From: Iphione sp. A-MEVVRFRX5
Taxonomy: Eukaryota
Assembly (NCBI GenBank): GCA_976226885.1
Contig: OZ320322.1
Span: forward strand, 43,152,001-43,216,000
Reading direction: 5' to 3'
Length of the DNA: 64,000 bases
The position numbers and the translations under genes are program-made. This document shows, piece after piece, positions 12,501 to 15,500 of the stretch; the stretch's first letter is position 1; the number at the start of each line of letters is the position of its first letter. The notes under the pieces were generated by a model. The model was not told the origin of the DNA. It saw nothing but the letters and a program-made list of their open reading frames with translations, and ran no database searches.

Positions 12501-15500
12501 TTGTTTGTGCGCTTAGGTCACTGTGGGATTGAAAGGGCAAGTCACACGCATGTTTTGTGTTGTGTCGTTTAAGTATAGCATGATGAATGCCAGGCAAAGC
12601 TTAAGGATCTCAACGTTGCCACAAGCTTCGGTGTTATTGTCACAGTTGCTAAAGTGATGCTGTATTTTCTTTAGTCACATAACTAGCGAGGAAATTTCAC
12701 AGTATTTCGTCCGTGTAGAGTGACCTTTTTAACAAGGACGGCAGCGTTAAGCTGGATGTATTCAGTCACAAAGCATGTTTATATTTAAGTTTAAAGGTTG
12801 TGTCACTGTTTGTTGCCTGTATATACTGTGGCGGGCCTCACTACCCGGTCAAGTTTCACCTCGCCCCAGTCGCTCACCCGCCAGCATGCCATGTCTCACC
12901 GTTTGTAGGGGTTGGCTTCGTGCGGGGCCTGGTCCTGCTTCGACGAGTTCAACCGTATCGACCTGGAGGTGTTGTCTGTGGTAGCCCAGCAGATCCTCAC
13001 CATCCAGAGAGGTAGGTGTCACTTAGGATTTGCCTGTCTGGATCCCTCCTGATCTGACATATATAGGCCCCTGTTTTCAAAAAATCTTATCGAGTGAATT
13101 ATTTTTTTTTATAAATAACCAGTCTTCAAGAGTAAAGGTACCTAGTGCTGTCTATAGACGTATTCTGACTGCAACACAAAGCAACAACATTAAGACAAGT
13201 TTTCAAACAATAACAGGTTATGTAGATGCATGCATGTGTTGTTTTAATGTAGGCTGATGCTGCGTTCGATGGTGCATGTCTTGTTTCAGTGACTAACGTC
13301 TCATGTCTTTTAGTTGCATGAATGCTGCTGGTTTTCGTCACAAGTAAAATAACATTCAGGATTGTAACTCTTTGTGGTACTGTCAGCTCCGTGCTGATTT
13401 GTATGAGGTGATATCCACCATGTAATCTCTACTACGAAGCCTGGATCCTCGCCAGCTCCACTGTCCACCTCTCCAAGCATGTTCTCTGTATAATTTACCT
13501 GTCGTCTCCCTCTTCCTACTAACCCACGCCGCTCGCTGCGCCTCAGGCATACGGAGAATGATGGAGCCCCGACCGGGTAGCGCCGGTGGCATTGTCGAAT
13601 CGCGATTCACTCGCTTGTTGCGCCGTAGTATTAACCTAACCGCGGACGAGGCGTCCCGGCCCGCCTCGGCCGCCGAGGAACCGAGCGCGCCCGACGCGCC
13701 GGCCTCCCGCCAGCCCACCTGGTCACGTGATGACACCCTGGTGTCCGACAGGGGGCGTCAGAGCGAGATCTCGCTGGTGCCCACCTACAGTCTCGTGCCC
13801 AAGAGCGAGAGTGCTGCCGTGTTTGACTTTGACGCGGAACTGTCCGCTGTCTTGGAGCACCAGGACCAGGGTGGGGCACCAGAGGAGTATTCTTATTGGG
13901 AGGATGAGGAAGGTAACCCCTTCTGTCCCCGAGCGCACTGCAGTTTCAGTTATTTTCTTTTTCCTTCAAATATTTCTACGAGTATTGTCCGCTTTTATCC
14001 AACTTCTACCTAACTATGACTAAAACTCTCACTTCTTCATATTACATTCACTTTTCAGAATAAGCAGCGCGTACCCCAAAATCTAAACCCCCAGCTTTTT
14101 CCTCCTTATATGGTAACTTCGGAACACCTTTTTTATAAAATATTTTTTTCATCGTTAAAGCTACATTACACTAATCTTTATGTGCACACATACATACTTT
14201 TACCTCCCATATATATGACACCTTTTTTATAACGTGAAACTTACTCCTTCAAATTTCAAGGCTTCCCTAGCATTTATGTTAAATAGATGTTAGAGTACGC
14301 AATACTTTTCATATCATTATTTTATTACATCATATCATTTCTTAAAACTTTTTAACCCGTACACGGCTGGTCATTATTACAGGGCATACGATGCCTCACA
14401 TCACTGGAATACATGAAACATGTCTGTGCTGACAAAAAAATATGAAGGAAAGCTATATTAACGACCGTAGAAAAAATATAACGTATCTTTATGTCCTTAG
14501 AAGTGCTTTTCTTTCCGGCGGTAATGGTCTTTCTGGCGTTATAATGGTATTTTCCTGCGGCTTCGCCAGGCCTGTTTCACTGCGCCTTATTGGTGACGTC
14601 ATACCAGACAGTAATCCTCCTCCTTTGGTTCCCCGATGGATTCTCCTCTTGAGAATTTAATCCCTGAACCAAGCACTTAATACAGAGCTTTCTGAAGTAC
14701 ATGTGCGTCTCTTTTAACATACGTGTACGTTAGAATGAGATCCTTTCCATATCGCACCTAATTACTAATATTACTAACACAGATGCCGCTCAGACATGAA
14801 CCATTTATACAGACACATACAGACGTGTGTATGCGTGACCTCATCAGTGAGGCTGCTGCTCACCACGCCCTCTGCCGGCCTCTTTCAGGTATCAACTCGG
14901 GCGCGGACACGCTGCTCTTCGAGGGGACAGAGATCCACCTGGAGCCGACGTGCTCCGTCTTCATCACCATGAACCCGGGCTACGCCGGCCGCTCCGAGCT
15001 GCCGGACAACCTCAAGGTGAGACCCGTGGCAGCCAGGCAGGGAGGGAAAGGGGTGGGGGGCTCAATGGGTTCCTGTATCATCTTGGGCAGCTGGCCTCGT
15101 ACCTGTACATGTATTGGTTCTCGAGGAAGTTGGAGTCAAAACATTTTGTTGTACCTTCCGAGCAGTAAATTTGATAGGACGGAGCCCTTTGTATATGATG
15201 TAGAGTGATGTTTCAGTGAAATACCTACAGTAACAAACTAAAAGTATGTATAAGATGCGTCGTATATGTGGTGAAGATTTCTTAGACGGAGCTCCTTCTA
15301 ATAAAAAAAAATAAATGTAGGGAAGACAGTTATCCACTACATGTGAAAATATCTCCTACATATGCATGTATTTCCACTCTGACTGCGTGTTCTCTTACCA
15401 CAGGCTCTGTTCAGAACGGTGGCCATGATGGTGCCGGACTACGCCCTCATCTCCGAGATTGTGCTCTACTCGTGCGGCTTCATCAATGCCCGCCCCCTGT

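Follow-up and report, generated by a model that had tools for sequence, protein, structure and literature searches.

Introduction

Few known protein segments are as conserved as the AAA1 catalytic module of dynein, and the control of axonemal dyneins is thought to act mainly through the tails, the light and intermediate chains and external complexes. Within the alpha heavy chain of the Chlamydomonas outer arm, an extended, disordered and phosphorylated loop lies over the buttress (bioRxiv 10.1101/2025.03.10.642390); AAA1 is never mentioned in that work. The pre-sensor-I insert of AAA1 is situated between H3 and S4 and is a beta-hairpin with the motif phi-x-phi-x-G-x-x-phi-x-phi, which lies over the H2/H3 cleft near AAA6 (PMC4047620). 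For the inner-arm axonemal dyneins (IADs) of groups IAD3-5, a Glu at position 4 of this motif was reported (PMC4047620, section 3.3.1). Here we analyze a 64,000-nucleotide (nt) stretch of the genome of Iphione sp. A-MEVVRFRX5 (contig OZ320322.1, positions 43,152,001 to 43,216,000; hereafter the window), in which an intron of a dynein heavy chain gene holds a GC-rich block of 366 nt at exactly this part of AAA1. A first-pass annotation of the window had read this block as a frame-preserving coding exon that would insert 122 residues into AAA1.

Our analysis agrees with that reading. The block is probably a genuine protein-coding exon of a DNAH7-type inner-arm dynein heavy chain gene, to judge from its sequence and from that of a second species. 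It has exon-like anatomy, its frame and splice signals are kept in the second species and it is under purifying selection. Its splicing, its alternative use and its effect on the motor are what we infer from these genomic data.

Host gene and position of the block

Judged by its translated exons, the host gene is a DNAH7 orthologue, an inner-arm axonemal dynein heavy chain of IAD group 3. When used as the sole query, the exon downstream of the block (exon 23; exon numbers 22 and 23 are those of the first-pass annotation) aligns end to end with residues 1404-1445 of human DNAH7 (PDB 8j07_g2; E 3e-18, ~85% identity), which is the best match among the solved dyneins, and the next paralogue is DNAH3 (E 2.6e-14). 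The AAA1 P-loop and the Walker B motif CFDEFNR are present in translated exons 21 and 22. The two exons, the block and the parts of it described below are on the plus strand. Exon 22 (12909-13011), a constitutive dynein exon, encodes Walker B together with helix H3, with a phase-1 end (CAG AGA G/gtaggt). Exon 23 (14889-15016), also constitutive, starts with cag/GT ATC AAC and encodes the AAA1 pre-sensor-I hairpin, with its full motif and the Glu at position 4, followed by the sensor-I strand. Reading the exon 23 sequence against the published motif (PMC4047620) puts the splice junction at the end of H3, six residues ahead of the hairpin. The location given at first, between the AAA1 Walker B and pre-sensor-I/sensor I, is thus right, and human DNAH7, for which a direct QRG-IN had been claimed, indeed runs G-IN directly, as do the other DNAH7-like loci that were examined.

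The intron between exons 22 and 23 is 1877 nt long, the third longest of 30 in the gene, where the median is ~370 nt. The candidate exon occupies 13547-13912, begins and ends in phase 1 and has 122 codons if the split one is counted; its length falls in the range of the exons of this gene (103-412 nt). It is preceded by a perfect TACTAAC branch-site motif at 13517-13523 and by a pyrimidine-rich tract ending in the acceptor gcgcctcag/ (13524-13546), and it is followed by the weak donor GTAACC at 13913-13918 (AAG/GTAACC at 13912/13913). The GC content of the block is 0.66 overall, where the intron has ~0.35-0.40, and 0.63-0.69 in 200-nt windows, versus 0.31-0.44 in the intron away from it. The only open frame in the block is the dynein-compatible one, with 2-8 stops in each of the other five, and at the composition of the block this required frame is open by chance with p = 0.03 (5000 shuffles). 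The GC content at third codon positions (GC3) is also highest in the dynein frame, 0.73 versus 0.54 and 0.66 in the two shifted frames. In all of this the first description of the block was accurate: the positions of the TACTAAC motif, the acceptor, the donor, the end of exon 22 and the start of exon 23 are exact on re-reading, the translation gives the quoted 122 residues free of stops, and the sharp rise in GC within an AT-rich intron is real.

Neither the 64-kb window nor 70 related loci gave a further copy of the block, and a tandem or dispersed repeat is rejected within the window, where the block is single. A gene on the minus strand is ruled out by the 2-4 stops per minus frame found in both species.

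Coding selection in a second species

The 122 residues were compared exhaustively, by phmmer, to 1.8 billion protein representatives, and one real match came out, P0002, a protein of 152 amino acids (aa) with 53% identity (E 2e-11). Four other weak matches, each in 4-15 separate stretches, were taken as low-complexity without inspection. P0002 is encoded in a 20.5-kb part (L001) of a 319-kb contig from an ENA metagenome assembly, in which 15 dynein exon blocks are colinear with those of the window at 77-89% nucleotide identity. In L001, exon 22 occupies 7305-7407 and the first base of exon 23 is 11491; at 9987-10391, in the intron between the two, there is a 405-nt homologue of the block.

The dynein exons of the two species were compared over 846 codons. 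The synonymous divergence (dS) is 0.99, the nonsynonymous divergence (dN) is 0.049 and their ratio omega is 0.05; exons 21 and 22 have 100% amino-acid identity. The introns do not align, and the identity of the flanks of the block is 0.37. With a dS of about 1 and introns that cannot be aligned, neutral sites are saturated between these species.

The L001 block, at 405 nt, is likewise a multiple of three, begins and ends in phase 1 and has the dynein frame as its single open one (chance 0.008 from composition). The two blocks share 51% amino-acid identity. In a nucleotide alignment made with MAFFT, to which no protein information was given, the four gaps in the block are of 45, 9, 9 and 6 nt, all of them multiples of three, and the identity at codon positions 1, 2 and 3 is 0.64, 0.67 and 0.42. 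Taken together, positions 1 and 2 stand apart from position 3 (Fisher p 3e-5) as well as from the flanks (p 1e-9), whilst position 3 is not distinguishable from the flanks (p 0.42). The Nei-Gojobori estimates for the block are a dN of 0.45, a saturated dS of ~2 and an omega of ~0.22, so that relative to dS its nonsynonymous change is about four times faster than in the motor exons. By this substitution pattern the block peptide is under purifying selection. A plain blastn comparison of the two loci picks up only 13821-13857 of the block (84% identity), and a tblastx comparison of 14 kb of them gave no other colinear conserved block beyond the known exons.

Because the frame, the triplet gaps, the codon pattern and the splice signals are all kept at saturated dS, the block is very probably a real coding exon, and the core of what the first-pass annotation claimed is supported. 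The search for the peptide in related sequences and the test of codon-level conservation in the same intron, which that annotation had proposed as checks, thus gave one homologue and one species pair in which the coding pattern is kept. The exon would have originated in a lineage common to the window genome and the L001 organism.

Outside the block, the two loci differ by a 256-nt intron of L001 (4077-4332, CAG/gtgggt...cccacag/ATCGTC) that is absent from the window, where the coding sequence is continuous at 11201/11202 (..ATCGACGAG ATCGTCTTC..). This presence and absence suggests that the intron, in the region of the dynein linker, was gained or lost by one of the lineages.

Splice signals

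The splice signals were scored with position weight matrices (PWMs) from 30 junctions of the host gene, which were defined with an intronless DNAH7-like open reading frame (ORF) of 3617 aa, L037, as guide. For the acceptor of the block the scores are 8.9 bits (window) and 6.2 bits (L001), versus a mean of 5.6 bits for the true acceptors, and only 1.3% of the intronic decoy AGs score as high as the block acceptor. The acceptor AG has the same offset in both species, 11 nt ahead of an in-frame ATG ATG (13558-13563 in the window, kept in L001), which would be read as Met-Met in the insert or as a possible start codon under two of the alternatives discussed below. The three codons between the acceptor and this ATG ATG are open and alike in both species (G/A, I/V, R, R, with a synonymous CGG/AGG change). 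The branch-site motif lies 23 nt ahead of the acceptor AG in the window (counted from the branch A) and 38 nt ahead in L001, where it stands within a 19-nt unit repeated 16 times. None of the other 30 acceptors has a TACTAAC at -60 to -13, and the density of this motif elsewhere in the introns is 0.006 per 48 nt.

The similarity between the window and L001 starts a few bases past the acceptor and stops at the donor. At the donor the window and L001 share the same 8 nt, GGTAACCC, past which no similarity is left. The donor falls within the top 3.4% of the intronic decoys on the PWM of the gene. A G at +5 is found in 30 of the 30 true donors, and the block donor has a C at this position in both species.

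Other possible splice sites are found in the block. A second donor-like site in phase, G/GTGGGG, lies inside it at 13870/13871 in the window (5.4 bits) and at 10346/10347 in L001 (3.6 bits). The string GGTGGGG is common to both species, and its use as a donor would give an exon of 324 nt (window) or 360 nt (L001) that lacks the acidic tail. L001 further has a GTGAGG that resembles a strong donor (10.9 bits), begins only 2 nt past the acceptor (9987-9994) and is without counterpart in the window. The intron of L001 also contains three minisatellites, none of which is found in the window: a 31-nt unit in ~74 copies (7430-9627), the 19-nt unit in 16 perfect copies (9645-9951) and a 29-nt unit in 4 copies (10423-10538). 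The 19-nt array, with a TACTAAC in each unit, ends ~35 nt ahead of the acceptor and the 29-nt array begins ~30 nt past the donor.

Predicted peptide

The structure of the insert was predicted with AlphaFold2. The model has a mean predicted local distance difference test score (pLDDT) of 57 and shows two helices, a basic one at residues 20-36 and an acidic one at residues 95-105; taken over 10-residue stretches, the mean pLDDT peaks at residues 91-100 (78). No match to the insert was found in Pfam or NCBIfam at E values up to 1, the ESM Atlas gave no usable match, and Rfam gave no match to the DNA of the block at E up to 1. The insert therefore appears as an orphan peptide, predicted to be mostly disordered.

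Analysis of the sequence conserved between the window and L001 shows invariant islands within the peptide, which are the two helices and the motifs RRMM.PRPGS and SRQPTWSR. The basic amphipathic helix (13603-13653) contains the invariant SRF..R...RSI.LT. The motif SRQPTWSR, residues 54-61 of the insert (13705-13728), is predicted to be disordered. The best-conserved motif is FDFDAEL.AVLE, residues 93-104 (13822-13857), which forms the acidic amphipathic helix in the model. It is followed by an acidic tail (13879-13911) that ends with EDEE, or EDED in L001, as seen in the translation and the alignment. The isoelectric point (pI) of the N-terminal half is 11.4 in the window and 9.7 in L001 and that of the C-terminal half is 4.1 in both, and Ser and Thr make up 17-20% of the residues. 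A probably disordered loop, acidic in its second part, had been suggested from the start; the model and the charge of the two halves are consistent with it.

Distribution

Scanning metagenomes with an adjacent dynein exon as query gave 69 DNAH7-like loci. In about a dozen of them exons 22 and 23 are contiguous, and in six there is a phase-1 intron of 237-579 nt at the same site. Word-index searches with the exon and with P0002 gave nothing beyond L001, scanning metagenome contigs with the motifs of the peptide gave no relative, and an exact look-up of a 151-aa ORF of the window that covers the block gave no record.

The uninterrupted ORF that served as a guide comes from compost metagenome contigs, L036 (688-11538) and L037 (5528-16378), which both carry 3617 intronless codons of a DNAH7-like inner-arm dynein gene of a eukaryote. 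In the window, downstream of the dynein gene, there is a tandem array at 57735-59856 with a unit of ~232 nt in 6-9 copies of 65-90% identity, and GC-rich blocks that are not dynein-like continue past it up to ~61400. Runs of N interrupt the dynein gene at 24411-24580, 42237-42405 and 43287-43421, and the exon models beside them are incomplete.

Discussion

Several observations weigh against a spliced coding exon in AAA1 and should be considered together. The case rests on genomic sequence, and the conservation of the block comes from a single species pair, since one other species carries it. The donor scores 5.2 bits in the window, under all 30 true donors of the gene (minimum 5.3, mean 9.8), and that of L001 is weaker still, with 3.9 bits. 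The GC3 of the block, 0.73, is under that of exon 22 (0.87) and exon 23 (0.98), and the dynein exons range over 0.71-0.98, mostly above 0.8. The exon is absent from the 69 DNAH7-like metagenome loci, of which ~20 were examined at this site, and the intronless L037 ORF has no insert there. The conserved ATG ATG stands in a good context only 11 nt into the exon and permits reading it as a start codon. Finally, we know of no case in which a large loop beside the main ATP site is tolerated. Two of these points can also be read in another way. A donor weaker than all the others of the gene is a hint of regulated use, and the lack of the insert in the other DNAH7-like loci examined points to an exon peculiar to the lineage in which the window and L001 belong.

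If the exon is spliced in, the sequence QRG-IN would turn into QRG-(121 residues)-G-IN. A mostly disordered loop would then follow on the end of H3 in AAA1, six residues ahead of the pre-sensor-I hairpin that packs over the H2/H3 cleft by AAA6, and it would consist of the basic helix, SRQPTWSR and the acidic FDFDAEL helix. Most likely, as far as the splice signals can tell, the exon is present in only part of the transcripts, i.e., it is a cassette; this partial inclusion is favoured because the block donor is the weakest in both species. The inclusion isoform would be a motor with an extra regulatory or docking loop on its catalytic module. By steric or electrostatic means such a loop might act as a gate at the AAA1/AAA6 seam, or it might dock a phospho-, calmodulin- or centrin-type partner through the basic helix.

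A further-reaching proposal is that this lineage evolved a switchable module in the primary ATPase site of dynein, by which the motor of certain cilia or sperm would be gated or retuned once the loop is spliced in. On the sequence features at hand we give this a fairly low probability. The basic amphipathic helix would in that case be a possible calmodulin- or centrin-type or kinase target.

The alternative that best survives is that the exon is real but constitutive, a lineage-specific and fixed insertion in AAA1 that is always included and cannot be switched. All of the evidence for a real exon fits this equally, and the strong acceptor together with the perfect branch site could offset the weak donor. 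Yet neither species has the +5 G in this donor, unlike the 30 others of the gene, and the block evolves about four times faster than the motor exons at nonsynonymous sites. A weak donor and faster evolution are typical of alternative exons. Since the weak donor is conserved and the block evolves faster, alternative use is preferred and a constitutive exon is possible but unlikely.

Another option is a small nested gene, in which the unspliced ORF at 13558-14013, of 151 aa in the window (152 aa in L001), is expressed from its own mRNA on the same strand as dynein. An ORF of 151-152 aa that begins with ATG does exist in both species, the one of L001 (P0002) was reported by a prokaryote-style gene caller, and the purifying selection on the peptide would be expected here as well. 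The conservation, however, ends exactly at GGTAACCC and not at the stop codon; the last 33 codons in the window and 22 in L001 are unrelated, those of L001 entering a minisatellite. A nested gene also gives no reason for a conserved acceptor and branch site, nor for the phase of the host gene at both ends (a chance of ~1 in 9), and no free-standing homologue was found among the 1.8 billion protein representatives. We consider this explanation improbable.

It may also be argued that the block is an alternative first exon, with an internal promoter in or directly ahead of the GC-rich sequence, a start at the ATG ATG at 13558 and splicing from 13912 to exon 23, giving a truncated dynein or a non-productive transcript. 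This would be in line with the ATG ATG that is kept in both species with an A at -3, with the conserved donor and donor phase, and with the CpG richness of the block (observed/expected ~1.0-1.3). Against this, CpG in the block is not above that of many ordinary exons of the gene, and the three codons ahead of the ATG stay open and similar. The strong acceptor, the pyrimidine tract and the TACTAAC, which the two species have at an equal offset although their surroundings are not conserved, would be left unexplained, and a dynein without tail, linker and AAA1 P-loop has no evident function. A first exon is therefore very improbable. Least of all do we favour a non-functional relic or chance, under which a GC-rich remnant in the intron would be open by accident and neither spliced nor translated: the lack of a family for the peptide, its predicted disorder, the weak donor and a case built on genomic sequence would suit it, but with neutral divergence saturated, the retention of the frame, of gaps in triplets only, of codon positions 1 and 2 and of both splice signals makes it extremely improbable.

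Comparison with known systems

A protein-coding exon that is probably genuine, and most likely a cassette, can now be set beside the systems that are closest to it. In the literature searched no dynein heavy-chain cassette exon or AAA1 insert is described; the coverage was partial, which is no proof of absence. If the reading is correct, a selected insert of 122-135 residues at the base of the AAA1 hairpin would show that a large loop is tolerated at that site. If, in addition, the exon is alternative, one gene would produce two motors with different regulation, the catalytic module of a dynein would be controlled by alternative splicing, and there would be a natural handle on how the AAA1/AAA6 seam affects the power stroke. 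If the exon is constitutive the meaning is more modest, that of a lineage-specific loop.

The closest relative of the host protein with known structure, human DNAH7 (PDB 8J07, 9FQR), has the same AAA1 sequence around the junction, and the host gene has the pre-sensor-I Glu at position 4; the human protein continues directly from G to IN with no insert, whereas the window gene has the candidate insert. The isoform-specific loops known from dynein motors resemble this insert in being long, disordered, rich in Ser and Thr, confined to one heavy-chain isoform or lineage and presumably regulatory. They differ in their position, since they are located in the N-terminal tail or close to the buttress and AAA4/AAA5, and in belonging to the constitutive sequence, whereas the insert of the window lies in AAA1 and has an exon of its own.

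The H3-S4 site itself is one at which AAA+ proteins, and AAA1-AAA5 of dynein, carry function-specific insertions (PMC4047620). The AAA1 pre-sensor-I insert of dynein is, however, a short beta-hairpin of ~17-19 residues (PMC4047620). The segment of the window and L001, of 122-135 residues, would precede this hairpin instead of replacing it, and is predicted to be unstructured save for two short helices. Finally, the block looks like the lineage-specific cassette exons that encode disordered segments with short linear motifs, in that it preserves the frame and has a length divisible by three, a weak splice site, fast evolution, islands of conserved motifs and an intron longer than usual. What sets it apart is the location: it is unusual for an exon of this kind to fall within the catalytic core of a motor ATPase, and its alternative use is suggested here by the conserved donor and the rate of evolution.

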